Source: Leidyana gryllorum EB-2025a (lineage: Eukaryota; Protista; Apicomplexa). Taken from it: a stretch of 64,000 bases of DNA. The notes under the pieces are model-generated. The model did not search any database. It saw nothing but the letters and a program-made list of their open reading frames with translations, and was not told the DNA's origin. A program made the translations under genes and the position numbers. This document shows, piece by piece, positions 1 through 54,997 of the stretch. Location of the stretch: the NCBI GenBank assembly GCA_048772705.1, contig JBLWGC010000036.1:186001-250000 (forward strand), in the 5' to 3' direction. How positions within the stretch are numbered: the stretch's first letter is position 1; every line of letters begins with the position of its first letter.

Positions 1-3000
1 GGCCAGTCCTCAGAAGTTGCTGTCTGGGGTGCTATTGCTTCAGTTTCCGTGCACGGTGGTGGCGTGAGAGCCTCCAGGATCGGCGGCAGTCTCCAGAAAT
101 TGAATGAGTTGAACTGATGGGAAACCATGAAAGCAGACCAGCGACCTGATGGCTGGCGTGGAGAGGTTCCCTGGATCGCTCCGCTGACAAAAAACGCTTA
201 GCTGCTGGCACGACACCCGGAGCAGCGGCGTTCAATCTCGAATTCGTCCATGTAGTCTGGGCCCGTGAGTAGGAACGCCGAACGTGCGTTTGGTCACATC
301 TTTCAACCGATACGCAGTTTTCATCCTCATAGAGTGCTGCTCTTCATCGAGACGTCGATGGTACGTAGCCGAAGTCGAGACACAAGTATCCGGACTCTCC
401 TGGACCATTGGAGTGGGAAGCCCGTACTCCATCGGCGAACCCGCCTCCACCGCCTCTTGCCGCCGCTGCTGTTCCTCAACAGCTTGCCCCTGAAGACGAC
501 TCGCATGCCAGGCACTAGCGCGCTCGACTGGAGCTTCATTGGAGGGACCGGCTCGACCGTCATCTAAACCCGGACTGGGTTCATGCGGGTTCCGCCATCC
601 CTCCAGGAGCAACTGCCGAGGGGTACCAGGCGAGGTGGCATTCCTATTTGGAGCAACTTTTGTTCCGCCTTCCAGAGAGTGAAAGAAGTTTGCTGGGCGA
701 CTTCGCTCGTAGCTGGCCAGACGTGAAAGCCGCTTCCTCTCTTTGATCCAATCTTCGCGTCTCAGCGAGCGTTCCAAAGATCCCTCTCCAGCGCCGCCGC
801 TGCTACCCGGGTGTCCGTTCCTCACCTCGTCGTCGGCTATTATTTCTTCCCGACTGTGGGGGTTCAATGCGGGAAACATGTCAGTCGCCATCTCGGACAT
901 AGACTCATATCTGAGTAAATCAACAAAGTGTGGTGTGTGTCAGGCAACAATCACTCACGTCTTGGCGAATGTCTTGTTCACATGATGGACGTGTCCAGTG
1001 GGATCAATGATGAATATTCGAGCTTCGGGAATGCCCACGTGTACATATGCACGATGATCCTGCGTGTGAGTGAGATCAGAAATACCACCTCTTCGCTGCT
1101 TGTGAGGCTCACCGTGTCTCGGTTTCCGAAGCCAGCATAGAACGGGTTGTAGAAGGGTGGGAACAGACTGCGAATGTCTCTCAGTGCAGCAATTTTGAAC
1201 ACGTAAGGTTTGCGATCGATCACTTCTCGCTTGAAAGATGGGAACAAACGATCAGGTGATAGAATTAAGGGGCCATCTGACGATCGCGTGTGTGTGGTGG
1301 TGCCGCCTCCTCCTCATTCGTCTCACCTGGTAATTTATTCCTTTCGTTCTGAGTGAGACCGAATAGGTAGTCACGGGTTGAATCTGCTTGACCAATTGCC
1401 CGTGCAGTGAGATAGAGAATTTTGTAGTCATGCTTTCGTACAGAAGAGAACAAGTGGGCCACGCCTGGGTGGGACCAATCTTTGCCCACGATAGGCATAA
1501 GTTGGCCCCAGACATCGGATCGTGTGATCGTCCCGTCAACATCAGAAACGACAATTTTCGAGTTCCGAGGCCACAGATATATAGTTCCTGTCACAGTCTT
1601 AGTCCCCTGCAGGGCTGAGGACACCGAAAAGGTGATGGGATTCGGCCCCGGTTCCAAGTTTAGGGACGCCTGCAGCCAATTCTCTGTCACCGAGCCCCTC
1701 ATCCACTTACCAGCTGTTCGGGAGTTGGTTTCAGACTCTTCCGATAGCGTTTGATTCTGGTGGTGTTAGTCTGTTGGTCGTCCTCCAAGGCAACAATGCC
1801 CGCTGTGGCTGCCAATTTATTGGGATCTGCGGTGGAGGACGTTCCTGTTGATGTTCTGGCAATGACCAGACCGTCGCCGACCACCTTCCCGGCATTGGGA
1901 GCGACAGTGGACAGAGTGGCTCCGAGAACCGGTTCCACTGCCGAGAGCGCGTCCACTCTGCCGAACTGCGTTTCCTCCTCATGAGGTGTATAACAGCTCA
2001 GACGTGAGCACAGAGTTTGATACCCTTTCCATATAGTGTTCATATCCTCAGCACTGACCTGACGGGGTTGAGCGGGGATTGGTCGGCGGCGAGTGGGACT
2101 GTCTGATCGGGCTCGCTTGCGAGCAAAGTGAGGAACCTCGACGGGAGACAGAATATCTTGGGCTTGTCTGGTCAACTTGGTGATCGGGTTGCGTACATCT
2201 TTGAACTGCAGTTGCCCTCGCAAGAGAGTGATGAACGCGTCTTTGGATAAGGATTGATTGAAGATCAACCACGAACACAATAAGGGTAGAGCTGTCTTCG
2301 CCGGGAAGTAGGGGGCGTCACCGTCGAAGCGGAACACCAATGAGGGATTGAACCATAAGCTGGGCTCTGCCTGCGTAGAGGAATATCGACTTTGAGCCTC
2401 GAGAAACACTTACGTCGAACCTCTCCCAGGTGAGTAAATTGGCCTGGAATACATCTTTGTCGTGTTGAATGTCCTCGGGAGTTCCGTAGAGCAGATGACC
2501 ACAGAGAGAGACTTCCACGCGAGAGTTTGGCTGTGTCAGAACCGGGTTATCGGCGCCCTGTACGTTGGCAGCAAAGTCCCGACACAGCTGGGCAACACCG
2601 TCTTGACTTGTTACTGGCACAGACTCTGCACTGGTTTGAGCGGGTCTTTCCAGAGGAGCGGGGGGCTCGGAGGGGGGAGCCGAGGGAGGTAGAGCTAAGG
2701 GTGGCGCGGTTTTGGGGGGAGGCCCTTCGGCCAGCGAGGTGGCGACTCGAGGAGACATGAGTGGTGATAAGGTGTTGTTGAAGTAATCTTCATCTTCCTC
2801 CCCAGCCGCAGCGGCCTGTTGAGCGTCACGTTCGATCTCTTCAGGGGTCCGAGTGTCCTCTACGATGAAGTAAGCCTCTCCAGCGGACCCGAGAGTCATC
2901 TTCAGGTCGGTCTCCTGCCAGTTGACGGTGACATTTACTATCTTCTCGCGACTACGCAGCAACTTTGCCTTCCCAAATCGCACATGGAAAGGAGTACTCC

Positions 3001-3170: not shown

Positions 3171-4356
3171 ATGACTGCAAAGTTGCTATGGGTTTGTGAT
3201 ATCCAAGTGAGTTCCCACTGCTGCTGACGAGTGTTCTGGGTAGAGCAAACTTGTCCCTGTTTTATATGACCACATCATTGCTGAGGAACGGATGCTCCAA
3301 TGTCTTAAACTATGCGCGAATGCAGCCGCCAAGTCGCCGCGAGGTAGCGCTCTTATCTGTTGCTCCACATCTCTTGTAATATAGAGTGGGGCGTCTTGGT
3401 GACGGAGCAGGTTCCCAGTAAACTTGGTCACACCATTCCAGCTGCCCTTGAAGTAGTCAAAGACATCTCTCCCCATAGTGTGAAGGAGAAGTCGAAATTC
3501 TCGGGCGCGGATGCTATTCTCGAATTCTCTAAAGAGCATCAGTCGCGATTTACGGAGCTGATTATTGTTGGAGCGGAGGCACATATCTGTGTTCTCAAGA
3601 CTGTCATGGATTTGCTGGGGAGGGCCGACCACAATTTCGATCACATCACTGTGCTCGAGGACGGGATTTATAGTATGGTACGCTCTGTCTATCTGAAAGG
3701 CTGTCAACTGCCACTGAAATCGTCCCAACCAGTCGCCGAAACATCGCACAATCGCCTTGGAGGCCCTTCATGAGCTGGACGCTAAGGTCAGGGTGGCCTC
3801 CTCCTCCCAGATCCAAGCAGGGTGGGGTGGACCGCCAGGCAAAGGGTACAAAGCAACTTGGATTGACACACCCGATCGTCTGTGCGTCTTCATTGACAAT
3901 GGGGACTCTGCTGTTACACTGAAATATGTCGTTCAATCCTTCTGCAAACTTCATGGTGGGTGCACGAACGAGCACTTGTCTTCTGCATCAAACATGTCGG
4001 GTTCAGGAATACCGCTGCTGGAGGCAGCTCAACTCAAACCACACCCAGACCGCGACGTGCTGGTTGTCTGTGGTAGGAGCCCTGCTCTGGAGCATTACTG
4101 GAAGGAGGTGGCTCTTGTGAAGGATTGTGGAGCGACAGTACCCGCTGGCGTCCATGCGCTCCCGTTGTCGCTGGAGTCCCTAATGTATATGCTGGTACCT
4201 AATGCTGCCGATCCGAAATTCAAGGTACGGCGGAACAGTTTCGGGAGAGACGATGTGAATGCTTGTTTAACAGCCTACACTGCAATTGGTCAAACAATGC
4301 AAGATAAGCGCAGTGCTATAGACGAGGAGGGATCATCAAAGTCGACCACTACATAG
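3171..4356 (+). CDS. Isochorismatase-family cysteine hydrolase (ISOC1/2-like) with C-terminal extension
   Basis: ATG 3171 gives MTAKLLWVCDIQ; spliced exons give TEQVPSKLGHT, KSKFS and GAEAHICVLKT (Asp-Lys-Cys triad motifs). Intron 3344-3384. Continues in frame into ORF 3757-4356. Confidence 0.85.
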
Positions 4357-4373
4357 AGGGTGGCTGTGTCTAT

Positions 4374-5267
4374 CTAGAGTTTGGTCTATATTGGGGTCAG
4401 TCGACAAAATGAAGCCGTTTCGGCTTTTCTTCCTCATGTACGCACAGGTGTGGGCAAATTATCTTCTTCAGCCAGCACAGCCGGGCGCTGCTGACTGCGG
4501 GATAGTAGGCCCGACGCCGCGGCATCGTCACCATAAACTCCGCCGCTGGTCAAATTGGCCTCCTCAGCTTGATTGGCACTGGCACGTCTCCGTATGATTC
4601 TTCTGATTAAGTTTGCCACCTTGATCATCAGTACAAATATCACAACCAAAGTCAATACACTGGTGATTCCCAACAAGATAGAGCTTAGGGTGTTGCCTCT
4701 CCTAGTTGGACATTGATTCTCAGGATAACACCGTTTGTCGAGGTCCAAACAGCAGGACATCCCAGTCATGCACTCTACTCCTCGACCAAACGGGCAGCAG
4801 GTGTGCTGCAGATGATCTCTGTATCGCTGAGGGAAGTCAGCTGCATCAGACGACGCTTGAACAATCGGGTTCGGAGCCACACAACATGCATCGCCCGAAT
4901 CCACTTTTTGTCCGCAGAGCTCGTCACTCCGGCAGCAGTTCTCACCGCATATCAGCGATTTGATATCACAGCACGTGAATTTGCATTGTCGGTGGTGATG
5001 ACACGTAACTGACGCATCACTGGGGGCCGTGTGATGGGCCAGAGAAACACTGACAGGAGGGCAACAGCAATCACGGCTACCCGGTACATCTGCCAGTGGG
5101 GCGTACGACTGAGCACATACTCCGCTGTTGCTCCCCAGCAGGCATTGATCAGTATTACCGCCAGTATCGCCGCCGCCACACGTGTCAGATAGCCTGCAGT
5201 CAATGCGGGCTTGGAAAAAGGTGTCGTCGGTGACCACCAGCGGCTTGGCTTGGTCCAATTTTTCCAT
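4374..5267 (-). CDS. Cysteine-rich single-pass membrane protein, unknown function
   Basis: ORF 4434-5267 has many CC/CCC doublets, a hydrophobic segment (ILLGITSVLTLVVIFVLMI) and a basic stop-transfer stretch. A terminal intron leads to TKL-stop at 4374. Confidence 0.65.
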
Positions 5268-9773: not shown

Positions 9774-12035
9774 AGTGTCTGGCTAAGGCTTCTTCCATCG
9801 CTCGGAAATTGGATCCAACTGCGTGGAAAAGCCTGATATACTGCTCCACGAGGTGTTGAACCACCCGTTCCTGAGCGATTTGTAATACTATGGAGGCGCA
9901 ACGTGTTTCTTTACCTTCTGAGCTTGTCGATTGGCGATCGATGCTATGGACTTTTCCGTGTCAGCGCGTAGTTCTGGTTTAATCAACTCTTTGCACGATC
10001 TCTTATAGCCTGAGCTCAAAGCAATATTGACTGGGCACCTCTGTTCTCAGCCTACCTGCGAAGAGGGCGAGGCCCAAGACAGTTGGGCGAAATCGGTCCG
10101 ACCCTCCGATCGTGATGCGCTCAACGTACTGGCGGGTCTGGATAGTCTTGATGTGCTCATGCATCGTTGCGTCTGTACCCACTCCGTACTTGTCCATACG
10201 GGATATCAACTCCACCTCTGACAGGAGCTGTGGTGGGCTCGTAGTGCCAACATCGAGCGTCAGTTTCTCTGGAGCCATTACGGACCCGGCCACCAAAGTT
10301 GGTAGAGTCTTTTGATGCCACGCTTCATAAGACCCCCACACTTCGAGAAAGCCGGGGTCAGTGATCATGACACCTTTGGTCGAAAATACTTCGCAGTCAA
10401 CTGCCACTTCGATGTACGACTCCTTTCCTTGGGCATCTGGTGAGCAAACTGCCAGAAAGTGCAGCGTTATCATCTTATAGAGCTCCCATTCGCGCTCATT
10501 CTGGCACTCATGTCGCTCAGCGCACTTCACTGGGTGAATCGGGGGATGGGCGGCATCGTCGTTGGTGCCCCGGCGGGGCAGATCGTACGACTCGTCAATC
10601 AGTTTGCGAGCGTAAGCACCCCAAACGGACGAGCTTGTCTGCTCGTGGACTAGTGTCTTGGGATCCATCGATTTGGGGAACGAGTCCGTCTCTGTTCTGG
10701 GGTAGCTGAGAATGCCTCTGTTATACAAAGCTTCGGCTAAAGCCATAGTCTCATGTGCGGCAAACTTGAGCAGTCTGGCCGCATACTTTGTCATTGCGAT
10801 GGTGTCTGGGGACTGTTGGAGACGCCGTTTCAGCGAGCACTCACTCATAGGCACTGGTTTGCGGCGTTTGGTTGGTCGATCATCCACCTTCTGGACTTTC
10901 ACCATGGGATTCAAGAGGCATCTCTGGTACACCACCATACAGAATAGTCTGTCGAATACTCTGTGCCTCTTCCACAAGAACGGAATGCTCTCTCCGTTGT
11001 GTCTGAAGCCAAATGTTGGGTGCGCGGAGATCGGCGGCTCACTTGATCGTCAATGAAAGATAGAAGAAGTTCTCCGGCACAAAGGCCTGAATTGCCGCGT
11101 ACCGCGACACCACAAATCCGAGTGTGGGGAATTGGCACGGCCCGTAACTGATGACTTTAGTCGGCATATTGAACGCTTGCTTGAATCTCAAAGTCATCAA
11201 TCTTGTCAGAGAGACTCCCAGACGCAGGTCAAGTTCTTGTCGCGCATCGACTGCCTGCCGTGAGAGGAGGAGTTACTCGAACACACAGGGGCTCAACGTT
11301 TACTTCGGCTAAGGCAACATCCGGAGGATGTAAAGTGGCCATGGCATGGCGGATATCACTCGCTGCGGAGATGGGTGTGTAGCGGAGAAGCAATCGAGGC
11401 ACCCATACCCGTGACCGCCGAGAAAGTTGCCCGATGCACAGCTATGCGGGGCTTAACCTTCTGAACCACTTCTACGACTTCAAATGCAATGCCTTCACCC
11501 TCGCGATCGCAATCAAGCCACAAGATCAGGGCATCACATCTGTACTGCTCGTGTTGATAGGGAGCAACGCTTTCGATACTCACTGGCGTGCGTATTTCGT
11601 TAGATTAGTGGCTAAGTCCTTATTATCAGTCGATACCCGCTTGTGCACGGGGGCTGACAGCATCAATACCATGGAGCACAAAGGCCTTTGTCATACCAAC
11701 AAGCAACGAAGACGGGGGAAATGACATCCAGTTATCATATTCAGGTGCGAAAGCGATTTCCATCAAATGTCTGTGGAGTGCGTCGGTCAACCGATTCAGA
11801 TAACAGCCGAGTTACCCTCGTACGCTGGTGAATATCATTTCGGCGGGTAACCCTTGGACTTGACATTGGAATGCCGATACAGAATTAAACTTGGATGATG
11901 ACTGAAGCTGTCGGAACGTAGGCAATCTTCGCTATACTACTATCGTACCCGCTCCACTCGTTGCCCCTGGCTGAGTATGGACACGATCTGTTTTGCCACT
12001 GATGGTTTCTCTGCGACACTCAAGTACTTCAGCAT
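9751..12035 (-). CDS. TOP3: DNA topoisomerase III (type IA)
   Basis: Toprim [18 protein letters not shown], active-site [15 protein letters not shown] and GTDAT. Last exons read ..[19 protein letters not shown]-stop at 9751. Confidence 0.95.
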
Positions 12036-12136
12036 CCTGATGAGGACAAAACGTCTGCCCCTCAATTTCCGGCTCACAAATTTGTCAAGAGCATCTTTTC
12101 TGACTCCTCTAGACTGGTTGTCTCATCGCGTGCTCA

Positions 12137-12352
12137 TCCTCGTGCACAACCGCTGGCGTGAAGCAACTAAACAGCGTCAGTGTTTGCACACGAGGTATAC
12201 CAATTAGTCCTACTTCAACATGGATTCTCGTCTTGGGCGACTATGCATACGAATCGGACAAACACTCCTTCTCCATGCACCATTATTTCCTCGTGCACAA
12301 CCGCTGGGGTGAAGTAACTAAACAGCGTCAGCGTTTGCACACGAGGTATACC
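12137..12352. repeat. Two-copy 65-nt direct repeat (12137-12201 and 12288-12352), each folding as a hairpin
   Basis: Direct comparison gives 62/65 identity at a period of 151 nt. Terminal inverted arms are CCTCGTG/CACGAGG. Confidence 0.97.
12138..12267 (+). ncRNA. Putative box H/ACA snoRNA (copy 1)
   Basis: Hairpin-hinge-hairpin-tail layout of about 130 nt: hairpin 12138-12195 with internal pocket, H box ATACCA (ANANNA) at 12197-12202 located 14 nt from the upper stem, second hairpin GTCC..GGAC at 12207-12259, ACA at 12262-12264. G-U pairs favour the + strand. Confidence 0.6.
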
Positions 12353-12389
12353 GATCTTCGGCGCCCTTAGAGGAGATGGGGAGACAGCG
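12289..12389 (+). ncRNA. Putative box H/ACA-like snoRNA (copy 2, different 3' hairpin)
   Basis: Same 5' hairpin as copy 1, imperfect H box ATACCG at 12348-12353, short second hairpin TCTTC..GGAGA, ACA at 12384-12386. Confidence 0.42.
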
Positions 12390-12536
12390 TCACCCTGTCA
12401 TAGGAAAAGAGGCTCCACATCCCCTATGACATACTTATATTGCCAATATTGTATCATGCTTGTCAATGGGTAATCGTTTCTGAAAGATTGCGTTGTCGAT
12501 CGGTCTGCTCAGGGGGCTCTTTTGCTCGTAGACTAA

Positions 12537-15052
12537 TCAGAAATTAGCTCCACTGGTACTGAGGGTGGACCAAGGAAGCAACGCTCGGAGAAAAACCAAT
12601 GCAGCATTGCTGTTCACATTGAGAGTGCCTGTGCGCTGAGCAAAATCGCTCCACCACCTTTGCAAAGGTGTTCCCTCTGTGCTGCCCGTACTTCGCAAAT
12701 TGATTGCATTCGCTGTACCACTCGCTTCAGGGGCCGAGTTTAGGAGAACGGATGCGAGTACAGGTTTGCGCGCATCGAACTCGGAACTGCGCACCCCGGC
12801 GTATTGGACTGATATTGTGGGGAGCGCAAGAAATAGACCAACTTGTGCAGCCGTCCGGCAGAATGCTTGCGGGATGGTTGCAACCGGGTCTGATACGCCT
12901 AGACTCCTCATGTTGTGCGCTCGAACTTCAACACTTCCCAGCTTGCTTTCAAGCACCTGGAAGGTGTCAAGCATCTTGCAGGCTTGGCGCAGCCATGGTA
13001 GCAGCGGCAGCCACAATTCATGAGATTGCCTACAATAGGCGGCGACCAATTCTGAACGGCGGTTTTTGAAGAGGTCTGCCAATCCATTTGCTTCGGAGGC
13101 ACTCAGGGTGGGGAGGACAGACTTCAAATAGGCAGGTACATCTCCCGACGACTTCTTGTTCAACACGGCATACTGACGAATTTCCGACTGGAATGCCGGT
13201 TCTGAACGAAAGAGTGTGTGCCGGAGATCTGAAATTCTTGACTTACTGGCGCTCGAATCCACCACCTCCAGGAGAAGGGCGGGGAAGGCCGGGAATAACC
13301 AAATAGCTCTCATGAGGCTCAAGTGACAGTATTCGGTATTGAGTTGGCCATCCACTTTGCTCGAAGTCCATTCAGCAGCAGCGGGGGTCACAATGTCAGA
13401 GCTGTTGCAGTAGCAGTATGTTCGAGCGTCAAGTGTCGTAAAGCTGCGTTCAAACGAGTTCCGCATGAACGTCCAGAACTCAGCAGCTGTCACATTGGTC
13501 AAAGAGTCGCTGAAAGCCTTTTCGGTGGCGGTTCGGGGCGGCAGGGCTCTCAGAGCCCCCAGGGCCGCACTGAAGGCATACTGTGGGAAAGCAAAGTCCA
13601 ATCGCCAAGCGAATGGCACACTGGTGCAGTCGATGCGTAGATTGCGCTCCCCCATGAAGCCTGTGGCGTTCCCTTCCTGCTGATAACCCCAGGTCTCCGG
13701 AACGAACCGGTCTATGATAGTTAACAATTGGTCGGTTTCCCGCGCCCGAACTGCCGTGTCGGCGATGAACAGCAGGGCGTGTGAGACATCGTTAGATAGT
13801 GTCATGCACAGTAGTAACCGGAAAAGCTGATCATCAGTGTGTGACACCCGACTCATATTCTTACCGTCAAAGCAGTCGCCGGGCAGCCACGCTGAACCAA
13901 ACTCCAAGCATACATGTGCAACACTTTAATTAGTAGCAGATTACCCAAAGCCGGTGTCGCGAGAGCCGCCTTGACCTCCTCTCGACGCTCGCGATTGGCA
14001 AATTGCATTTCTCGTAAACTTTCAGTACGCAGATTCCAATCGACGTGCAGGTCATCTGCGATGGTGGCCAAGGCCGAAGCCACCTCCCGCTCGTCGATTC
14101 TGCTCAACATCATATGTGGTAAAGGGGGCTGGCAGTGGCCTCCAGCATTGTGCTGGTGAGGATTGAGCTTTGAGGGGTGGAAGTGGTAGGCCAGTGAGGT
14201 CTGCATAGCCCCAACAGCCTTCAGGATGTATTGAAAGGATGTCTCAAACTGATCCTGCTGAATGTAAGAATCAGCCAGGAACAGATTGGCCGAGGGGTGA
14301 AAGGGGTTGAGGTCGAACCGCGTGAACTCGTGCAGCATGTGTAAGTCTCCGCGAGCCACAATGTCTTCGAGCGGCTCAAAACTGCTCAAATATCGCTCAG
14401 TGGGGAAGATTCCCCATCGACCCTCACTGCCTTCAACGAGGCCCATAGTGAAATAGTTCTCTCCCCGAGGATCGAAATTGTCCCAGCGATGTCCAGCGGA
14501 GGCCTCCTCCCTCATCTTCAGCAGCTCGTTCTTGGGGCAGAGATACCCATGCCGCTGAGACACCATTGTTTTGAAGGCACGTTTCCGGGCACGTCTCTGT
14601 TGTACTTGGGATATCTTGGTCATCTCAACTTCCGGGTCAAAGCTGACCAGCTGGAAACTGAAGCACGTCCGCGCACTCGTGGTGGGACCGCCGTCCTCGG
14701 CGTTGTCCTCGCTCACTTCGTCTTCGAGTTGCTCGGATTCGACATTCTGCCCTTCTGCTGCACCCTCCTCGTTTACCCGCGCGACAATGTCAGCAGCGTC
14801 CTTGTCCAAGGCAGAGCGCGACTTGGTACCCGCACTGGGGACACTGCTCTGGTACGCCAGTACGACCTCTGGCTCACCATCGCTCTTGGACTCCTCATGC
14901 TCGACCTCGTCCTCGCCGTCGGCTTCTGAGTCACTAATAGCGAAAGGGTTTCTATGTGCTTGTACGCTACTAGCTTCTGATGCCTCACTGTCGCTCTCAG
15001 CGGCCTCCAAAACTTGGCCCTTACGGAGCAGTTTAACTTGGCGCGAAGCCAT
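12537..15052 (-). CDS. TCF25: TCF25 / Rqc1 ribosome quality-control protein
   Basis: Acidic N-terminus, then NPFHPSANLFLAD, HMYAWSLVQRGCPATAL, LLFIADTAVRA and FPQYAFSAALG, which follow TCF25/Rqc1 conserved blocks. Two large exons. Confidence 0.78.
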
Positions 15053-21631: not shown

Positions 21632-23920
21632 CTCTATTCGTACAAGCGAACTGGGGCCGTGCTGTCCCACAAAGTGCGATACAAATCCACGTAGGGCCTA
21701 CTGGCCGAGACCTTGTAGGGCGTGGGATGCACCAAACGAAAATGGTCGGCGCGGAAACTCTTGAGGGAGTTTAAGCACGTTTTCCGGCATTGCTGGGGGG
21801 AGAAGAAGATTAATGGGCGGACGGGCGGTTGAATTGATACTCACCACCAGATACTGCAGGTGACTCTTGCCGTCATATATGCGTAGCTCGGTCATGTCTC
21901 TCTCGGTCTCACACTGATCAGAGGGTGCCGAACCGCTGGAATAATCTGTTATATGTTCGGAGTCGAGTATTTCGGGGGGCAGGAAGTTCTCCTCCGTGCA
22001 TCTACGCGCGGGTAACCCCCCGGCTCGCTGAGTCGCGGTGGCTGGTGATTTGGCGCTCTCAGTAGCGGATACAACGCTACTCGAAGGTCCCAGAATATGG
22101 CGTGTCGCTCGACCGTTCCGCCAGATACAACGCAACAAGCGCTCAACTCGCGCTGGACGGACGAAGCACCTCTTGGTGTCGTCCGTTATGTGTTGGCAAT
22201 ACACCTTGTCACCTGGCTCGGGTGCGTTCTGGCCGGCCAGTTCGATCAAGTCTAGTATAGGCGTCTCTTCTTTGTCGTACAATCGATAGATTTCCTTGCG
22301 ACAGGGCAGGGTCGTCTTTGAGATCTCGGCTGATATCTTCATTACCGGCTCTCCGTTAATCTCACACAACTTGTACACCATTCCCAACGCAGGTTGACTA
22401 TAGCAGGTCACCAAATGGGTGCCGATTCCGTAAGTGTCTATCGCATGCTCCTACGACCGGAAATATTGATGAGGGCGAAGATTGATGAAGGGAAAGCCCT
22501 GAGGGACAGAGAAAGGACTTACTTGTTGTTGCAAAGCGTGTAACACTGTTTCATTAATATTGTTCGAGGCCACAATTTTACAGGGCCGGAGGTCTTTGCC
22601 CATCTGCACCGAAATTGCGCCAACAACGAAAGACAAACTCACCAAATCTCCCATTGTATCAATGGTTTCGCGGGCGATAGTGGAGAGGTAAGCCAGATCA
22701 CCCGAGTCCAGGCGAATCCCTCCTGGCGAATACCCCCACTCTAATAAGGCAAGACTAACAAAGCAGAAGTTGGGAACTCCTGACACCATTACATCATACG
22801 TATCTACAAGCGCCAGGAAGGTATTCGGGAAGGCTTGCGCATATGCAATGAAAGCTGCAAGTTCTCCTTCATGACAGGACAGACATTTCGGATATTTTTG
22901 GATCAGCTCCTTCTTAATCTCCAACACGCGGTCCGCGAAAGAAATCTTGGGCGGTTCTACATGAGCCCCAGCTGCAGGCTCGAGATTCTTGTCATGAAGA
23001 TCCGAAAGATCTTTGAATGCCGTCACATAGGCATGAGCGTGCGTTCCTCGACACGGAAGACCGAAGAGGAAGGAAGCACGGACATTAGAGGTCGCGTCAA
23101 AGCCTCCAACAAAGGAATATCGGGACGCCGACATCCCTCCATCTGGACCCTGAGCTCGACGCAAACCGAATTCCAAGAGATTCTTGTCAAAGCCAGCAGC
23201 GATGCGGTATCTTGCGGCATTAGTTGCCATTAACGATGCAAAGTTCAACAGAGTCAAGACCGTTGTCTCCAAGAGTTGACATAATGCCACGGGACCTTCT
23301 ATACGTAAGAGTGGCTCGCGCGGGAATACCAGAGAGCCCTCCTTGATGGCTGAAAAGCGCGAGCACACACGTCAGAGTGCGAATTAGAAACAAACACGTA
23401 CCGTGAACAGTCAAGGCTGAGCAGTCCACCGTTCTCAGCCAGTCAAAAAATGCTGCATCACAGGTTGGCATAACCTCTCTGTTCGGCGGGGCAAAAAGAC
23501 GTTGATGTCGTTGCCAATGGCAGACGCGCCCTTACCGGAGGAAATGAATCTGAGCCTCGTCGAAACGAAAGGTGTTGATGAATCGGACAACATCATTGAC
23601 ACCACCAAGGACGGTGAATTCTCCCTTGAAAGGGTTTGTGCGGAAGAACACCTCGAAGACACTTGGCTGTTCGTGTTTGCCCGATTTCCAATAAGAGTAT
23701 GCCATGGTGATCTGATAGAAATCGGTCAAGGTAGCTTGAGTGTCCTGATTCCAAGGGATGCCGACGCGCTCATCGAGTTGGAATCGCTCCAGAAACTTGA
23801 GCTCTTGGCCTCTCTGATAAATCTCCAACTCAGCTTTCCTGTGAGGGGGCAAATACCAGCAGAGTGCTAGTCTTACTTGTACGCCTTCACATCTTCGGGG
23901 GCTTCCAGGCCTGGACGCAT
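21632..23920 (-). CDS. NAPRT: Nicotinate phosphoribosyltransferase
   Basis: LTDFYQITMAY, EFGLRRAQGPDGG, GTHAHA, LVDTYD, GIRLDSGDL, QPALGMVYKL and terminal PTPYKVS..LW..AP. Confidence 0.95.
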
Positions 23921-23950: not shown

Positions 23951-26900
23951 CTATCTATGTTTATATATTGACTCAGTCCTGTGGGCTGCAGACTCCCCCC
24001 AGCCTCCTTCTTTGGGTAGGGATACAGCCGCGTATCCGGCTCTCCACTACCCCCCAATGACACAACTCCATCTTGTGATGCCTGCTCTGCCGACTTCATC
24101 CGCTCCAGAAATGCAGAGATGTGTAGAATAAACGGCAGTCCGTACTTCTCTGTCTATAGAACATATTGACTACACGCACTGCCTCCAATCTCGGTCTTAC
24201 CTTAACTTTCGCGTTAAACCCGGCCAACTTCATCTCTCTCAACTCCGTCAACGTTCTGGGCAGCTCATCTGCCATTCTACGCAGTCCAGCGAGGTTGATA
24301 ATGGACCCTGCGTCGCGAAGCTGGAACTGAGCGACCATCTTCTTCCTCAACTCAGTCAGCTCAGAATACAACAAATCCTTCTGACTCAGTGTCAAATGCG
24401 TATCGTTGGGCGGAGGCGAGTTCTCCTTGGGACTCTCTTCCAACAGGTCGTCCAAATCCTCCAAGTCACCCCCCCCTCCTGCGAATGGCTGGGGGCATTG
24501 TTGCGTGGCCCACGTAGTCAGCGGCCGAGCCGGCGGGGGGGAGGACTGGATGCTAATGACCTCCTCCTGTGCCTTTTCGACCATTTGCGTCTTGGCGTAT
24601 CGAGTGGGAGCTGCCGTCGTGAACACTTTCGGCGACAATGACCGGGCGCGAGTGATGTCGGGCAAAACATTGGCCGCCTGCCGAGCGCAATCGCCCTCGA
24701 TAATATAAGAGGCCACGCCATTGCTGGGTAACCGCACAACGCGTTCTCCCAGAATCTACGCAGCACCGCGATTTGCGACCGAGTCGAATGCCCCTAACTC
24801 ACTTTGGTCGTTAGCATCTTATTCAAGAGGCGTACACAATCATCGGTGGTCCATTTGCGCTTCTTTAGCCATCCGAACGCCCCCAACTCTGTGAGTGTGG
24901 ATTCGTACAGAGGATATTTCTTGAACTTCAATCCCATCAAGATCGACTTGAGATCCAGAAGTGTCAAGCCGGGCGAATACCCGCCTTGATTCCGGAAAGT
25001 CCCCTGAAGTTCCCGAACAAAGCGCACTATTTCGGCCACTTCCGTCTTACAATCCCTCTTCTCTGACAGAAGGTGCACAACAGCGGTATCTGATCGACAT
25101 TGGAGACCATCACCACTTACCCATGGGCCCGGCTTGACTCCTCCGCTCGCAGTTGTCGCACCGCAAGGCGCACACTCCTTCGAACTTTTCTCCAAAGTGC
25201 TGTCATTGAGGTTGTTTTGGTGGAGTCTTTGCCGCCCGCTTACCTCCAGAAGCAGCGTCCGTCTGCAGGTGAATTGGTCCTCACAAAAGTTGAGCATTTC
25301 CAGGAGTGCCTTGGCCGACCGATCTTTCCTGTTCGAGGGAGGGCCGAGAGTAAATCCGATGGGGTGACCAGTTGAGTGACCTACGCTGCGGCGTCCTTGT
25401 CGGTTTGCGCATCGAGCCATTGGTGACGGCTTTTATCCTTTTGGTCGTAGTACATAATGCAGTACGACTCTAAGCCGTCTCGTCCGGCTCGTCCCGACTC
25501 CTGGTAGAAGTTCTCCACACATTTAGGCATTGCCAGATGGATGACGAATCGGACGTCTTTCTTGTTGATACCCATCCCGAAGGCAATGGTGGCGACCATC
25601 ACTTCGAACTCTTCCGCCATCCAGTCGCGTTGGACTTGTTCTCTGTCTTCAGCCTTCATACCGCCATGGTACATCCCGCTGCGGATTCCTCTCGAGTTCA
25701 TAACGTTTGCCGTCTCCTCCACATTGTTCCGCGAGAGACTGTCACTCAGCTTTCAGCTCACTCCACCCCAAAACGTCGCTCACCAATAGACGATGCCACA
25801 CTTATCGCGGAATTTGGAGCGGATCAGCGGTACAACTTCGTTCTCCAGGGCCTTTGGTCCTCTCTGTCTGACTTGGTACCTACCAGCGGCATCAGCAACG
25901 GTTACGATCGCAATATCGGCTCACTTGAGATTAGGCCGATCGAAGGAGCTGCGGAAGATCTGAGCGTTTCTCATCCCCAGTTGTGACACAACGTCTTCCA
26001 GAATGTCGACTGTTGCGCTGGCCGTTAGTGCCAGTATGGGGACACGAGGGTAGCCTGAGTTTCGCATTGGTGACCTGCCTGGCGACGTCCCGGGGGCTCA
26101 CGGTCGCGGAGATACTTCAACTTGGTGTAGTCCGGCCGGAAGTCATTTCCCCACTGTGAGACGCAATGCGCCTCGTCGATGACAAAACGACATAAACGTC
26201 CCGCCTGGTCGAGTCGATCAAATAATGACAGCAGAGTTTCGCTCGCCCCGATTTTCTCGGGTGTCACAAAGAGGAACTTGAGAGGAGCTGACATGTCAGG
26301 TTTCTCGCTGACGCAACTTGCTCGTTGCCGTTCGACCACTCACCATTCATTGTACACATTCTTCGTCTCCTCCCAGCTCAAGTTGCCCCCTAAGACCTGC
26401 GCGCGGACATTCAATCCGTAAACGGTGTCCGATTGGTCCTACAGGTTTTGTAGACACCTTTTGCACATAGACTACCTGCATGAGACTGACCAAAGGCATG
26501 ACCACTATGGTCACGCCCTCGTCCAGAATACCCGTCAAGTGGAAACACAACGACTTTCCACCGCCAGTGGGAAGCATAACAAAGACGTCGCACCCGCTGA
26601 GCGCAGCATTGATAACTTCTTTCTGTAGCATCTCATGTTCGAAAGCATAACTGCCCTACTTGAAGTGGTCTAAAGGATTCATTTCCGAATATGGTCATGT
26701 TCGTGGATTCCACCACATCATCCCATTCAAATTGATTGGTAAACCACGGCTCAGTGCCGTCACATAGATGACAATTAGGAAGATTAGACAGATCTTTCCG
26801 CAGATTCAAAAGTCGTCGCTTTTGCCCTCGACGACTCTTCATCGTGTGAACTTTCTCATCCACAATATCCTCCTCAACTCCACCGGTCGTGCTTGTGTCC

Positions 26901-27818
26901 ACACCACTCCTTGTCATACTCGACCACTCCTCGCGACCATAAGCCGTCCGCCCCAGTCTTCCCGGTCGCTCTGATGCCCCAAACGGTCGATGCGTCTCTT
27001 TGGAACCGAAACTCTCCGTTGTCGGCACGCTTTCGCGTACTGTCTCTTGCTCCGCCAAACCTTCACACGCATGAGCTCTCAACGCCTCTGGATGGAGAAG
27101 GGGTCGCGCGCGCTGTGAGGGCGCAGCCTGACACTTCCGGCTCGGAGCAAACAGATCCGAAATCTCAACCCTCTTGTCCACACATCCAGCAGCAAAGAGA
27201 TTAGTGGCGTTGGCCGGACCCAATACATTTGCTGGTGAGGGCACCATTCTTGGAGGCTCGTGGGCCAGACGCAAGGGGACCTCCTCCTCCAGCGACGGAA
27301 CCAGTTCCCCCGAGACGCGACTATATACACTGACGATGTGCTGCGCACCGAGTCACAAACTCGAAGGGGGTATCATTCACCTGCAAGTCTTGATGCGAAA
27401 TGCTCGGTACAATCCGTCCACCGACACTCGGCGGGGCAAAGGGGGTTGACAGGCAATACTGAGCAGCGGCATACGAGTTATTACTGACGGCCGCAAGCTC
27501 CTTAGACATTACATCTCGAAAAACGCTCAGGAAGTTGTTGATCAGGGGGGTCTGAGGGTCCCAAGGCGAAGTCGCATGTGTCTGGCGATGTGCCTCAGCG
27601 AGGGCGGGCAATGGGGCGTGTTTTGGACCACTACTAGTTAGCCGATTCTCCACATTGATAGCCACCACATTCGCTCTCTGCGGCGCCGTCTTACTTCTCG
27701 CGGTAGTAGACGCAGATCGCCCAGCAGCTCGAGCTTTGGGCTTCGACTTTGCCTTCGGTTTGAAGGTCTTGGAGGTCTGAGTCGTCAACCGTGGATTGGA
27801 CTTGGCTTTGGGGGGCAT
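23951..27818 (-). CDS. RECQ: RecQ-family DNA helicase (BLM/Sgs1-like) with RQC and HRDC domains
   Basis: FRPLQ, LPTGGGKSLC, DEAHCVSQWGNDFRPDY, ATIAFGMGINK, QESGRAGRDG, RQC CRR..LL, and an HRDC-like segment in ORF 24096-24737. Confidence 0.94.
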
Positions 27819-27841: not shown

Positions 27842-30703
27842 ATGGTACGGTGGTCGTACTGGAGCAGGAGGGCGGTGGTGTTCAGCTTGCGGCACAGTCG
27901 GTGGACGGGAGCTTTGCTATTCATATTCTTCGCCCTATGGAGAACTTTACGGCTCGATTTCAATGACAAGATATGGCGGGTTCACCCTGCAATGGGCACA
28001 ATGATGGATCGCGAAGTGTATCGATCCAGGCGCTTAATTAGCAATCTACCGGCTGTCATGTCCGTAGAAGCGGTCAAACACGGCTTGGGGCATGAACCTG
28101 TGGTATCGGATGAACTCTGGAGAGGTATATTGGATTTCAGCTTTCACAGTTGGAGCTTCTGCGCAAGTACCATACGTCTGTTATGGACTGTGTCTCGTTG
28201 TGTGTATCAGCTTGCGAACGCCATATATCCTATTCTGAGACCCATATTCGTTGGCTTCTGGGCTTTGCCACGCTTGACAAAAGTGTACTGCCTCGCACTG
28301 CTGACGTTGTCGTGCGTGACAGCAACGCTATGGCGAAAAGGCTATATTCAACGAGCGGGAGCACGACTGCGGGTGTGGCATATGCGCCTGGCTGATCTGG
28401 TTGCGAACTATGGGCCCTATGTCCTGTTCCTTGCGCTCATCTATCTTCCTCTCAAACAAGCGCTATCCTTACCTCATTTCCGTGTACTACACCAGAATCT
28501 GTTGTATTGCATAGCTATATCTTACTCGTTGATCACAAGTATCGGAATTGTAATATTACGACGTTTCCAAGAAATGCGGGTGGCATGTGGAATAATTGAG
28601 CCTCCCAAGAGTGTCGACGGTAGTCTTACACGTCGCACAGAGTTGGCACGGCGACAGATCCATAAGCTGCCTCCTGGAACTGATCTGAGCCGGCCGCCTA
28701 CAGGTGTGGTAGTTGCTTCAACGGTTCTGGGAATGACGACTCCCCGCGGGCTCACCAGTGCGGTCACCCGAGGATCAACCGTAGCCCCTCTGGAAGTCCG
28801 TAAGACCGTATTGCGCCAAGCGGTCGTTCACATTCTGACCTTTTGGGCAACTCTGACTTTGTATCATGCTCTGATGGTGATTCCCGAGAAGATGGTTGAG
28901 ATACTGCTCCGAGAGCCTTTGCCGATATTCTCGATATGGTCCATAGGAGCGAGTTACACGGACAGAGTGCGTAGACTCATCCTTACTCCCACGGCCGTGT
29001 TGGGTTACGATGAAATTATCTATCTGAAAGCGCCACAACACACTATCCCGAACGGCGTGGTTACTGGTATCATTGCCCCCCGGTTGGCCTGGGTGTTACT
29101 CACGTGTCACGAGATACTTACGTCGATTTTGGTGTTGTCGGTTCTTTTGCAGCATGATCGATTTGGAGATTGGATCCGTCGGATTGCAGTGGACTTCCTG
29201 GAATACGTGGTCTACAAATTGGGAGGACTCAAAGTAGTATTGGTGAACCGCGTGCGCCGCACAAAAGAGCGACAAATTGAGAAAGATTACATATTCGGTG
29301 ACACCGACTCCCCTTATATTGGCTATCTCTCGTCCAGAGGTGCAGGGGGTTCTGGAATGATTGTCGGAGATGAGGACGACGACAAGTACGCACGTTCAGT
29401 GCCGGCCTTCCCCACTGCACGAGACGGGCCCCAGGTGCCCAACATACCGCTATTCGATATCCAGGAAGGTGCATATTATCCGACACCCCTCTATCGTGCC
29501 AATTCCGACCAAACGCAGCCTTGGTTGGGTAAACTTCTAGACTTCTTCCGGAATCTCGGTGGACGACATGTGGAAAGATTCTTATTCCTCTTTGGTTTCT
29601 TACCAATTCAAAAGTTGAAGGAGATTGTGATCCATGCAGCCCCATTGTGTTTCTTACTCACTCCGAGCCTCATTTGTCGCCCAGCGTTCCTCATCATCGC
29701 CCTATTCTTGCCCATGCTCTATGGTCTCAAAGGACTGTATCGCAGGGCTCTCGAAAAAGCCGTATATTGGCAGACGTACTACACAGCTCTTATGCTCTTC
29801 ATCGCGGGGCTGGATATACTGGCCAGCTCCTCGCCCCTCGCGGCCTGGCTCGTTTTCGCCTTGAGACCAAAATTCGCTGCGGTGCTGCTACTACTATGGA
29901 TTTGCACAGAACCTGATGTGCTCGGAGTCTTTGTTGTGAACACTGCTTCACGGGTGTCGAAACACTCAGTTCAGGTCGCCTTGTCGGCGCGCCGATCCAC
30001 CACACAGCCAGCGGCCGACGCCCTCAAGATGGAACAGGAGAACTATCCCTGCCATAGTGCCCCCCCTATTGGCCCGCCGGAGCTCAGCGCCCTCGACAAG
30101 GTGAAACAAAGATTGGCTGACAAGGAAAAAACCAATCGGTCCGAAGCCAAGATTGAGGGGCGGAAACTGGATGACTTTTCAGATAAACCAACCCCAGAAG
30201 ACGAGGATAACGACTCATTGTTTCCGCCTCGCCTCTCACCTCCCAAGGACTCCTCATCACATTATAGTGATGTCGCAGCCTCCAAGAAGCCTATGATTGA
30301 CCAAACTCCCACCAGTAACACCGACACACACCCTGCTCCAACCACAAATCAAAAACCCACCAATCCGAGTGATCCAGAGTTTTCCGGTATGTGGGGACGT
30401 ACACGCCGAGCAGGGAGGGCGCGAGCGCCTCCTTCCGAGAGTGCTGGAGCTGGAGAAGACCCCGTCCGAGCGAAGTCCAAGGGAGAAGTCGAGGCAGGGA
30501 AGGAAGATCCAACTCGTCGCACAACCCGTCGCAAGGGAACCGATGTTTCGGCCACGAGTACGGCCACTATAACTAGTCGAAGAGAGTCATCTTTGTCAGG
30601 CAGTACAGCAGGTCTGAAGAAGCGTTCCCAGCCCAAAGCGTTACCGAGAAGGGAACTGCGGTCTCGCAGTCGCCCATCAGCAACGCCCCCAGCAGTAGCC
30701 TAG
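27842..30703 (+). CDS. Large intronless multi-pass membrane protein with TB2/DP1/HVA22 (REEP)-like segment and disordered tail
   Basis: ORF of about 950 codons with many hydrophobic helices. LFLPMLYGLKGL..YWQTYY..AWL..PKF..LLWI resembles the REEP/HVA22 pattern. Start codon uncertain. Confidence 0.7.
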   Translation: MVRWSYWSRRAVVFSLRHSRWTGALLFIFFALWRTLRLDFNDKIWRVHPAMGTMMDREVYRSRRLISNLPAVMSVEAVKHGLGHEPVVSDELWRGILDFSFHSWSFCASTIRLLWTVSRCVYQLANAIYPILRPIFVGFWALPRLTKVYCLALLTLSCVTATLWRKGYIQRAGARLRVWHMRLADLVANYGPYVLFLALIYLPLKQALSLPHFRVLHQNLLYCIAISYSLITSIGIVILRRFQEMRVACGIIEPPKSVDGSLTRRTELARRQIHKLPPGTDLSRPPTGVVVASTVLGMTTPRGLTSAVTRGSTVAPLEVRKTVLRQAVVHILTFWATLTLYHALMVIPEKMVEILLREPLPIFSIWSIGASYTDRVRRLILTPTAVLGYDEIIYLKAPQHTIPNGVVTGIIAPRLAWVLLTCHEILTSILVLSVLLQHDRFGDWIRRIAVDFLEYVVYKLGGLKVVLVNRVRRTKERQIEKDYIFGDTDSPYIGYLSSRGAGGSGMIVGDEDDDKYARSVPAFPTARDGPQVPNIPLFDIQEGAYYPTPLYRANSDQTQPWLGKLLDFFRNLGGRHVERFLFLFGFLPIQKLKEIVIHAAPLCFLLTPSLICRPAFLIIALFLPMLYGLKGLYRRALEKAVYWQTYYTALMLFIAGLDILASSSPLAAWLVFALRPKFAAVLLLLWICTEPDVLGVFVVNTASRVSKHSVQVALSARRSTTQPAADALKMEQENYPCHSAPPIGPPELSALDKVKQRLADKEKTNRSEAKIEGRKLDDFSDKPTPEDEDNDSLFPPRLSPPKDSSSHYSDVAASKKPMIDQTPTSNTDTHPAPTTNQKPTNPSDPEFSGMWGRTRRAGRARAPPSESAGAGEDPVRAKSKGEVEAGKEDPTRRTTRRKGTDVSATSTATITSRRESSLSGSTAGLKKRSQPKALPRRELRSRSRPSATPPAVA

Positions 30704-52822: not shown

Positions 52823-54997
52823 ATGAGTTCAAGGTTCATCTTCTTAGTCACCACGATCCTCAACTCAGTGAGGGGGGAAAGACTATGCTTGTGGTTCTAT
52901 AACGGATTAGGGGGTCACCTGGCGGACATTGACTCTGGAGATTGTCTGGAGCAGTGCACGAGCACCCGGTATGGTGTGGGAGCTACCGCGCTCACCATTG
53001 ATTTCGGCTGGGTGACTGACGAATGTGACTCCAATCTGGTTGTAAGCATGGGGAACACGGTTGCAAAAACCTCGTATGAGAGCTGGATGCTGGACGACAG
53101 CGTGGCTCTCGATGCTGCCGCCGTTCTCAACACCAAAGCAACTTTGATACGTTCGGGTGACATAGAATTTGGCTTCGGACTCAACCGGACGAGAGATGAT
53201 CGACTCGGTACACTATTGGGAGCGAATTTGTTGTATGAGGGCGAACGAGTATTCGAAGCCTATCATATAGAAAATGTGTACTTGAAGGGCAGAGTTCGAA
53301 AGATAGCTTTCATTGGAATAATCGACAGTTTGGTACGTGAATCTCTGTACCCGCCCGCATTGGCAGGCTATGACCTGAGCCCCCCGGTGGAAACCGCCAA
53401 CCGAATTGCAGAGGATATCTCCGAAGCACACGCTCCCGATTTGATCATTTTACTCGTCGACACCGACGAAGTGCTCCAAGGATTGAGTCCCAAAATTCAC
53501 GCGATCGTGGGAGGACCAGATCGAGGAGACCCATGGGGCCGTCTTCCATCTGGTGTCAGGATGCCAGCGGATTTGGCTGGGAACCTCGCGCTCCTGAGGA
53601 TCGACGCGTATGGGCCTGCAAGAAATGAAAATGCCTCTGCCAAAGATAATTACGACCACCGAAACCGTTCAATTGAGGGGTTCACGACATTGGAAACACA
53701 GGGACGGAAATTGCGGTCGGCAGCGAAAGATCTCCCTACGACAACAGTGCATCTCTCGCCGTCAGCCGGTGCAACGGCCTACTTTTTAGAGACCACCGCT
53801 TTGGTTCGAAATCATTGGGTGGCCCTCCGATATGAGAGCGGCCACAACGAATGGACGTACAACCGGTCTCCCATGCTGCTGAGCAGCACTTATGCAACGA
53901 GAGCTAAGAATTTTGTTCGTGCAGTGTGGGCATCGCTGCAAGGCTCGGACGAAGAGCTGGCGCGCAGTGATGACTTTTGGGGCTACAAGGATACGGATTT
54001 CATTCTGAATGCGTTGTATGCTGATGCTCTGCTGGATGCAGCGACGAGACTGGGAGAGCCCACGGCGACTATGGCTTTGGCTGGGGGCTGCTTCCTCACT
54101 CGCCCCGCTTCCCTCCAGCATCATCAGGGGGTTCTAACCAAACGGATGTTCCGAGACACCTTCTTCAAGGGAAGTAGGGTAGTGGCCGTTGACCTTACGG
54201 GCCATCAAATCAGACGACACTTACTACGGCCCCGGGACTGTCCCTCTCTCGGAGCCGGATTTCACTGGATCTCCCGTTTAATGATCCCTTTGGGTGCCCG
54301 ACTTTGCTGGGCAACCACAGAGCTCGGCGAGGAATTCGACTGCGACTCCATCAATTTGTCCGCCACATACCGTGTTTTACTCAGTACGCCTGGGTACCAA
54401 CAATACAGTCTCCAGGAGGGAAGCAACCCCCGACACATTGACGTCTTTGATTACAACCTGGTTATTGACTATGTCAAACAACAAGCTGGTAAAAACAATG
54501 GAGTCCTTCCCAGACCCCATGAGCGACAATACTATGGAATCAACGATTATCGGTCTAAAACCAAACTAAGTCTGATCAACTATGGCTATACACATAATGC
54601 GCTGACGATACAAGCCACCATTAGCACGGAACATGACATGTTAAACGGTCCATTTAGTCTAAGATGGTGGTTCCCTACATTTTCAAGGGTAACTCGTCAA
54701 CAAGTAAACACGTTATCGGTCACGAAAACACAGCCGTACACCGTGAATATCTCAATCCCGAGTGTTCCTTTTGAGGCGGAAAGTTTGTACGTGTCTCTGG
54801 TGACGGAACGCTTCGGGGTGGACAATCTACCCTTCGGAGGCGTACTCGCTGAGTTGAATTTGACTAATGAGGGGGGAAACGAAGAGACTCCGATCAAAGG
54901 TGATGGTGATGGTGATGGTGGCACCTCGGTGTACAACACCGCATACTATTTGCTGATACTGTCTCTGCTATTGCTGTTCATACTCACTTTGGTCTGA
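52823..54997 (+). CDS. 5'-nucleotidase/apyrase-like surface protein, probably catalytically inactive
   Basis: Signal peptide MSSRFIFLVTTILNSVRG; metallophosphoesterase-like blocks LLGANL, KIAFIGI, DLIILL and AIVGG; 5'-NT C-domain-like NALYADAL and VDLTGHQI; hydrophobic C-terminus (TM or GPI). Intronless. Confidence 0.68.
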   Translation: MSSRFIFLVTTILNSVRGERLCLWFYNGLGGHLADIDSGDCLEQCTSTRYGVGATALTIDFGWVTDECDSNLVVSMGNTVAKTSYESWMLDDSVALDAAAVLNTKATLIRSGDIEFGFGLNRTRDDRLGTLLGANLLYEGERVFEAYHIENVYLKGRVRKIAFIGIIDSLVRESLYPPALAGYDLSPPVETANRIAEDISEAHAPDLIILLVDTDEVLQGLSPKIHAIVGGPDRGDPWGRLPSGVRMPADLAGNLALLRIDAYGPARNENASAKDNYDHRNRSIEGFTTLETQGRKLRSAAKDLPTTTVHLSPSAGATAYFLETTALVRNHWVALRYESGHNEWTYNRSPMLLSSTYATRAKNFVRAVWASLQGSDEELARSDDFWGYKDTDFILNALYADALLDAATRLGEPTATMALAGGCFLTRPASLQHHQGVLTKRMFRDTFFKGSRVVAVDLTGHQIRRHLLRPRDCPSLGAGFHWISRLMIPLGARLCWATTELGEEFDCDSINLSATYRVLLSTPGYQQYSLQEGSNPRHIDVFDYNLVIDYVKQQAGKNNGVLPRPHERQYYGINDYRSKTKLSLINYGYTHNALTIQATISTEHDMLNGPFSLRWWFPTFSRVTRQQVNTLSVTKTQPYTVNISIPSVPFEAESLYVSLVTERFGVDNLPFGGVLAELNLTNEGGNEETPIKGDGDGDGGTSVYNTAYYLLILSLLLLFILTLV

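Follow-up and report, generated by a model that had tools for sequence, protein, structure and literature searches.

In the window, by which we mean the whole stretch of DNA that was analysed (64 kb, G000:C36:186001-250000 in assembly coordinates), the gap between the TOP3 gene and a Tcf25-like gene contains a 68-nt block in two copies, and judging from its sequence we lean towards reading this duplicated block as an H/ACA-type pseudouridylation guide module, encoded on the + strand and directed to U802 of the LSU rRNA of the same organism. The duplicated hairpin itself is a genuine feature that chance does not explain and that occurs at this locus alone, whereas the transcription of the module, the strand that is transcribed, its assembly into an RNP, and the modification of U802 are inferred.

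The locus and the duplicated block

The assembly that holds the window is eukaryotic and consists of 15.5 Mb in 237 contigs, and a dyskerin DKCLD domain is encoded in this genome. The features of the gap are collected in Table 1. TOP3, whose nearest relative in a library of 1.8 billion proteins was a sequence of 50% identity from the EukProt transcriptome GHVP01, runs leftwards from its start at the left edge of the gap and any + strand RNA from the gap would diverge from it, which as a layout agrees with the preliminary description of this DNA, where a + strand RNA was placed head-to-head with TOP3. A gap of 500 nt is unusual considering that many adjacent ORFs in the mechanical ORF list are spaced by 10-80 nt.

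Table 1. Features of the TOP3/Tcf25-like gap, and the other loci of the window that match the strict H/ACA criteria (positions are those of the window)
Feature	Position	Strand	Remarks
Gap (~500 nt)	12036-12536		between two - strand genes, TOP3 and Tcf25-like
TOP3 start codon, left border of gap	12035-12033	-	Topoisom_bac 1.9e-58 in downstream exon
Tcf25-like stop codon, right border of gap	12537-12539	-	
Upstream hairpin	12089-12135	+	dG -11.5, z -1.7; 9/200 shuffles as good
Module copy 1	12137-12204	+	hairpin 12138-12195, box AUACCA 12197-12202
Candidate 3' hairpin of copy 1	12207-12264	+	GUCC/GGAC lower stem, irregular upper stem, ACA 12262-12264
Module copy 2	12288-12355	+	hairpin 12289-12346, AUACCG 12348-12353
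Candidate 3' hairpin of copy 2	12378-12431	+	GGGGA/UCCCC lower stem, ACA 12429-12431
Other strict matches	~23200-23290 (+), ~54330-54411 (-), ~30190-30273 (-), ~26370-26452 (+), ~27740-27817 (+)		targets LSU U2484, U2190, U2778, U2976, U1803

A repeat search showed that the two copies of the block form a direct repeat, 151 nt apart, in which 94% of the 68 nt are identical and four positions differ. Further copies were not found in the whole 15.5-Mb genome at E<=10 and the flanking parts are single-copy, and a MITE or other dispersed repeat, which had been named beforehand as the finding that would speak against the guide reading, was therefore rejected, as the only two copies genome-wide are the local ones. 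An exact 20-mer scan of metagenome contigs also gave no match to the module.

In both copies the hairpin is made of a 7-bp lower stem (CCUCGUG/CACGAGG), a 6x6 internal loop (CACAAC/UUUGCA), an 8-bp upper stem (CGCUGGCG/CGUCAGUG), and a 16-nt apical loop, and AUA is found 14 nt past the upper stem. The stems, the pocket, and the ATACCA at 14 nt from the upper stem had been described earlier and were reproduced here both in the sequence and in the fold. When compared to shuffles, the hairpin of copy 1 (dG -26.3 kcal/mol) had a z of -3.97 and that of copy 2 (dG -25.0 kcal/mol) a z of -3.64; in the MFE fold three pocket positions pair with each other (CAA/UUG). Of the four differences between the copies, one lies in the apical loop (1 of its 16 positions), and from this the neutral divergence between the copies is only about 6%. 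Another turns a G-U pair into G-C in copy 2 (12181 T vs 12332 C), as had been observed before, the third changes an upper-stem C-G pair to a G.G mismatch in copy 2, and the fourth, which was missed when the differences were earlier counted as three, is an A to G change in the box of copy 2. The box of copy 1, AUACCA, fits ANANNA and the box of copy 2 is thus AUACCG, in which the AUA is kept and the sixth A is lost, and which is outside ANANNA. The edges of the block are close to those of the motif, as it starts 1 nt 5' of the lower stem and ends 2 nt 3' of the box.

Complementarity of the pocket to LSU rRNA

The rRNAs of this organism were located by pattern and by cmscan, the LSU rRNA at L011:5309-8537(-) and the 5.8S and SSU rRNAs on L015. 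A conserved LSU stretch had been expected as the target in the preliminary description and it is present in the organism's own LSU rRNA as GACGUGCAAAUCGUUCGUC. When the LSU, SSU, 5.8S, and 5S rRNAs were scanned in a snoGPS-like manner with the + strand pocket, there was a single match in all four, at LSU U802, with only Watson-Crick pairs and no G-U. Upstream of U802 the duplex comprises 6 Watson-Crick pairs, which become 7 when the first pair of the lower stem is opened, and downstream it comprises 3 (GUU/AAC), and U802 is the predicted target of both copies. The earlier prediction that the pocket selects the U after GCAAA is thus upheld by a unique 7+3 Watson-Crick match at U802, but the 3' side of this match is only 3 bp long. 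Among 2000 shuffled pockets, 1% reached at least 9 Watson-Crick pairs. According to published work, guided pseudouridylation needs at least 8 bp (PMC6049503), and the U802 duplex (7+3 bp) is above this value.

If the module is such a guide, the hairpin would open a 6x6 pocket between the 7-bp lower stem and the 8-bp upper stem, and the 3' strand of the pocket, UUUGCA(C), would pair with LSU GUGCAAA while the 5' strand, AAC, would pair with GUU. U802 and C803 would then stay unpaired where the upper stem begins, at 14-15 nt from the box AUA(CCA), and the box would anchor dyskerin/Cbf5, which would then convert U802 to pseudouridine.

With loose H/ACA-like criteria 280 matches were found in 128 kb, that is, on both strands of the 64-kb window, and because they are this numerous loose matches carry no meaning. 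With strict criteria (upper stem of at least 6 bp, lower stem of at least 6 bp, and no G-U), which were set after the candidate had been seen, five other loci with at least 9 bp were found on both strands of the 64-kb window, one of which reaches at least 10 bp, and the chance of such a match in a 500-nt gap is roughly 0.01-0.04. All five were counted as background. The one at 23281 falls in an apparent ORF on the - strand, and the contexts of U2484 and U2190 resemble what we take to be known yeast pseudouridine sites.

U802 was placed on the yeast rRNA with a yeast sequence that was cross-checked on the base identities at seven listed yeast modification sites. We take G722 of this organism to be yeast Gm805, and with the resulting offset of 83 nt and no indels U802 would presumably correspond to U885 of the yeast 25S rRNA, which lies in the loop of helix 35. 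Between 776 and 960 no pseudouridine is listed in the yeast modification table and U885 is thus not a known one, which is why the predicted site would be lineage-specific, and this lowers the prior for the guide reading somewhat. Orthology of the module to snR80, the guide for 25S pseudouridine 776, was rejected because the equivalent of U802, yeast U885, is about 109 nt away from it.

Other RNA genes of the genome

A snoRNA cluster at G000:C51:233437-233930 on the - strand (L016 ~1222-1890) contains an snR34/U65 orthologue followed by U18 and three U14 copies, and it was used as a control from within the genome. The Rfam scores of all members of this cluster are below the gathering thresholds. 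The snR34/U65 orthologue (L016 ~1750-1890, -) has two hairpins with AUACUA between them and ACA at the end. When the scanner was applied to it, the 3' pocket was assigned to LSU U2753 (GGC-U-CUUCC, 4+5 bp, ACA) and the 5' pocket to LSU U2699 (CUGGC-U-UGUGGCAG, 6+7 bp, H box AUACUA). These two sites lie 54 nt apart and this is what we take, from the yeast and E. coli numbering, to be the spacing of yeast pseudouridines 2826 and 2880 that are guided by snR34. The genome has canonical H/ACA RNAs plus dyskerin, and guide duplexes of 9-13 bp are normal in it. The hinge, size, and layout of copy 1 closely parallel those of the snR34/U65 control. The U14 copies of the array are 89-98% identical to each other and this identity stops at the edges of the mature RNAs, the spacers being unalignable; by analogy with this behaviour, the sharply bounded 68-nt block suggests a functional RNA unit.

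The rDNA and snRNA loci gave some further observations. In G000:C157 (L011 1-10000, L012 10001-14291) one rDNA unit lies between the 5S rRNA and about 19 dense tRNA genes, and this tRNA cluster recurs at the opposite end of the contig. The SSU of this unit is represented by its 3' part only, from about model position 1190, and the sequence upstream of GGUGGUGCAUGGCCG does not resemble rRNA and has a high GC content; an insertion, truncation of this copy, or misassembly could account for it. In G000:C73 (L015 1-7459) SSU plus 5.8S occurs twice in full, once at 457-2234 (+) and once, inverted, at 3431-5209 (-). Short fragments of the LSU 5' end separate the two copies, 5S and the 3' half of an LSU are located further out, and this arrangement is either palindromic rDNA or an assembly artefact. 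There are 11 U2-like loci, for example C211:8480-8672(-) and C230:1500674-1500867(-), and 8 U6 loci, for example C215:4773-4876(-). Two of the U2 copies were read and proved very dissimilar, and the region that recognises the branch point appears unusual in both, with UUUGUAUUU in place of GUAGUA.

Other hairpins in the gap and the architecture of the module

The gap had been described as a cluster of five meaningful hairpins, but it is the duplicated hairpin alone that is statistically strong, the others having z values of -1.7, -2.1, and -1.35. The upstream hairpin is indistinguishable from chance. The candidate 3' hairpin of copy 1 (12205-12261) has a dG of -13.5 and a z of -2.1, and copy 1 as a whole is laid out as a 58-nt hairpin, AUACCA, a 4-nt hinge, a 53-nt hairpin, and ACA 2 nt past the stem. 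Copy 2 has 24 extra nt in its hinge, and the H/ACA-like fold of its 3' part (12376-12426, z -1.35) is no better than that of shuffles. The perfect 9-bp stem that had been reported at 12396-12404/12423-12431 is indeed present with a z of -2.9; the ACA of copy 2 is within its 3' arm, and it competes with the H/ACA-like fold of this 3' part and would bury the ACA. In the alternative, non-significant fold of the 3' part of copy 2 the ACA is 14 nt from an upper stem.

Neither for the 3' pockets nor for the upstream hairpin was a convincing target found in LSU, SSU, 5.8S, 5S, U2, and U6, and when U2 and U6 were scanned with the 3' pockets one weak U2b match with two G-U pairs was obtained (copy 1 3' hairpin). 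The parts downstream of the two modules have no residual similarity to each other (p = 0.6), and since the neutral divergence is merely about 6% they are not diverged homologues. Donor loci for the 3' hairpins were not found in the genome, where both 3' parts are single-copy. It was proposed in the preliminary description that the copies share only the 5' hairpin and the hinge and that this arose by modular hairpin shuffling. The first part of this proposal agrees with our data, as the repeat is confined to the hairpin plus the box, but the second part is not supported: each 3' part occurs once in the genome, the two show no relation, and there is thus no donor module. Only the hairpin-plus-box module was copied or homogenised.

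As to how the guide may be built, one tentative model sees in copy 1 the start of a canonical double-hairpin snoRNA of 131 nt (12137-12267) and in copy 2 a partial duplicate that covers the 5' half of this RNA, and the borders of the block also fit such a partial duplication. Another model, likewise doubtful, is that there are two single-hairpin AUA-box units of about 66 nt each. By this single-hairpin model, which we put forward with reserve, a self-contained module would have been duplicated in a probable alveolate that also has canonical double-hairpin RNAs. A single-hairpin unit would explain why the conservation ends right after the box and why the sixth position of the box is free, and, as the unit would end 3 nt past the AUA, the A to G change in the box would be in a free tail.

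Strand and other classes of RNA

The folding energy does not separate the + strand from the - strand. The - strand hairpins have dG values of -23.3 and -25.7 kcal/mol, z values of -2.55 and -4.06, and an 11-bp lower stem, and on this strand the 9-bp stem grows to 12 bp, at about 105 nt beyond the Tcf25-like stop. One G-U pair that copy 1 and copy 2 have in common would read as C.A, a mismatch, in a - strand RNA. An H/ACA reading of the - strand was rejected because a box follows one copy only and because the best target, SSU U519 (3+6), needs a G-U.

When Rfam was searched nothing was found at gathering score across the window, and the H/ACA families gave no match at E<=10 over 11800-12700. 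This empty result carries little weight because Rfam also misses the snR34/U65 orthologue of this genome. The C/D matches from Rfam at the locus were weak only (E 1.1 and 4.3). A box C/D RNA would be expected to have at least 10-12 nt antisense to rRNA; in 11850-12560 the longest complementarity to rRNA was 10 nt, and shuffled sequences gave more matches of this kind. The box C/D reading of the gap, with UGAUGA at 12038 and CUGA at 12100, was rejected as it has neither a terminal stem nor antisense beyond chance; this pair of boxes (12038-12103, + strand) adjoins the TOP3 start. A C-box-like AUGAUGA that is directly followed by CUGA was also seen at 11889-11927 (+), inside or antisense to the first TOP3 intron, and this is the weak match to SNORD101 (E 1.1). 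No known regulatory family matched at the locus, and as for a promoter motif common to the gap and the C51 snoRNA cluster there was one shared 8-mer, which is within chance expectation.

Alternative explanations

The preliminary description had seen in the gap two complete double-hairpin H/ACA snoRNAs (~12137-12267 and 12288-12434) with a shared 5' hairpin and hinge and shuffled 3' hairpins, which is a sub-case of the guide reading and which we now regard as improbable. What holds of it is the geometry of the duplicated 5' hairpin, and it is also true that the layout of copy 1 mirrors that of an snR34/U65-like RNA, that the 20-nt spacer before copy 2 resembles the spacers of the C51 cluster, and that the alternative 3' fold of copy 2 puts the ACA at 14 nt from the upper stem. 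However, the H box of copy 2 is broken (AUACCG) and is followed by a hinge with 24 extra nt, the 3' hairpins are weak, that of copy 2 having a z of -1.35 and a competing 9-bp stem that buries its ACA, and neither 3' pocket has an rRNA target, the one match in U2/U6 being weak with two G-U pairs. Moreover, the 3' halves are unique and without residual homology to each other, and a divergence of about 6% cannot have erased such homology.

It is unlikely, though it has to be weighed seriously, that the hairpins are structured elements unrelated to pseudouridylation (for example hairpins in a Tcf25-like 3' UTR on the - strand or in the promoter or 5' leader of TOP3, or an inverted repeat to which a protein binds) and that the box and the rRNA match are coincidental. 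Both flanking genes are on the - strand and - strand transcripts may span the gap, where the hairpins fold about as well and the 9-bp stem reaches 12 bp at about 105 nt past the Tcf25-like stop; in addition, loose H/ACA-like matches are common by chance and the site is not a known pseudouridine in yeast. A coincidence of this kind would have a joint chance of about 0.002 per strand, the product of about 0.2 for a correctly spaced ANA box and about 0.01 for a Watson-Crick match to rRNA of at least 9 bp, and it would have to be reconciled with the G-U pair that is kept in both copies and becomes C.A on the - strand. There is also neither a shared promoter motif nor a match to a known regulatory family in favour of it, and the sharp borders of the block fit the snoRNA arrays of this genome. 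Less weight still is given to a recent neutral segmental duplication of a fortuitous 68-nt hairpin with no RNA function in either copy, which we consider quite improbable. There are only two copies, 151 nt apart and 94% identical, the A to G change in the box and the G.G mismatch, which make up two of the four differences, would seem to be harmful, and the fact that four substitutions spare the pocket, the lower stem, and the AUA is not significant (about 0.11), all of which a neutral duplication would accommodate. Nevertheless, random breakpoints falling 1 nt from the lower stem on one side and 2 nt from the box on the other would be an unlikely coincidence, and the z of about -4 for the hairpin, its specific rRNA match, and the way in which the 500-nt gap stands out among neighbouring ORF spacings of 10-80 nt argue against it as well.

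Relation to known H/ACA RNAs and significance

The duplicated block, read as an H/ACA guide module, is like the canonical box H/ACA snoRNAs, with snR34/U65 as the control, in having a pocketed hairpin and, in copy 1, an ANANNA-type box at 14-15 nt from the top of the pocket, and also in the 4-nt hinge, the candidate second hairpin of about 53 nt, the ACA near the stem, and the bipartite pairing to rRNA of 9-13 bp, the box being AUACCA here and AUACUA in the control. It is unlike them in that there is no homology to an Rfam H/ACA family, its second hairpins are weak and have no target, the H box of copy 2 has lost the sixth A, the duplication is restricted to the 5' half, and the target is not a conserved pseudouridine site. 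Yeast snR80 is, like the module proposed here, a guide for LSU domain II, but its target, pseudouridine 776, differs from U885, the yeast equivalent of U802. Single-hairpin H/ACA-like RNAs have been described in trypanosomatids, where they have an AGA box, and in Entamoeba histolytica (PMC2613932; PMC3542256), and such forms have not been reported in Plasmodium falciparum (PMC3542256). The module resembles these RNAs in that one guide hairpin is combined with a 3' ANA box in about 65-70 nt, whereas it differs from them in that the box is AUA and not ACA or AGA and in that a canonical double-hairpin RNA is used in this genome as well.

The machinery and the logic of the proposed module would be those of standard H/ACA RNAs, and no long-standing question is opened by it. 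If the single-hairpin reading is true, the helix-35 loop of the LSU, which is close to the exit tunnel, would carry a pseudouridine specific to this lineage, and guide hairpins would behave as evolutionary units that are copied independently. A duplication that is limited to the hairpin and its box offers, on a small scale, a natural experiment on the copying of one H/ACA hairpin as an independent module, and perhaps on its functioning as one. If the guide is real, it would add both a guide and a lineage-specific site, the equivalent of yeast U885, to the snoRNA catalogue of a little-studied protist.
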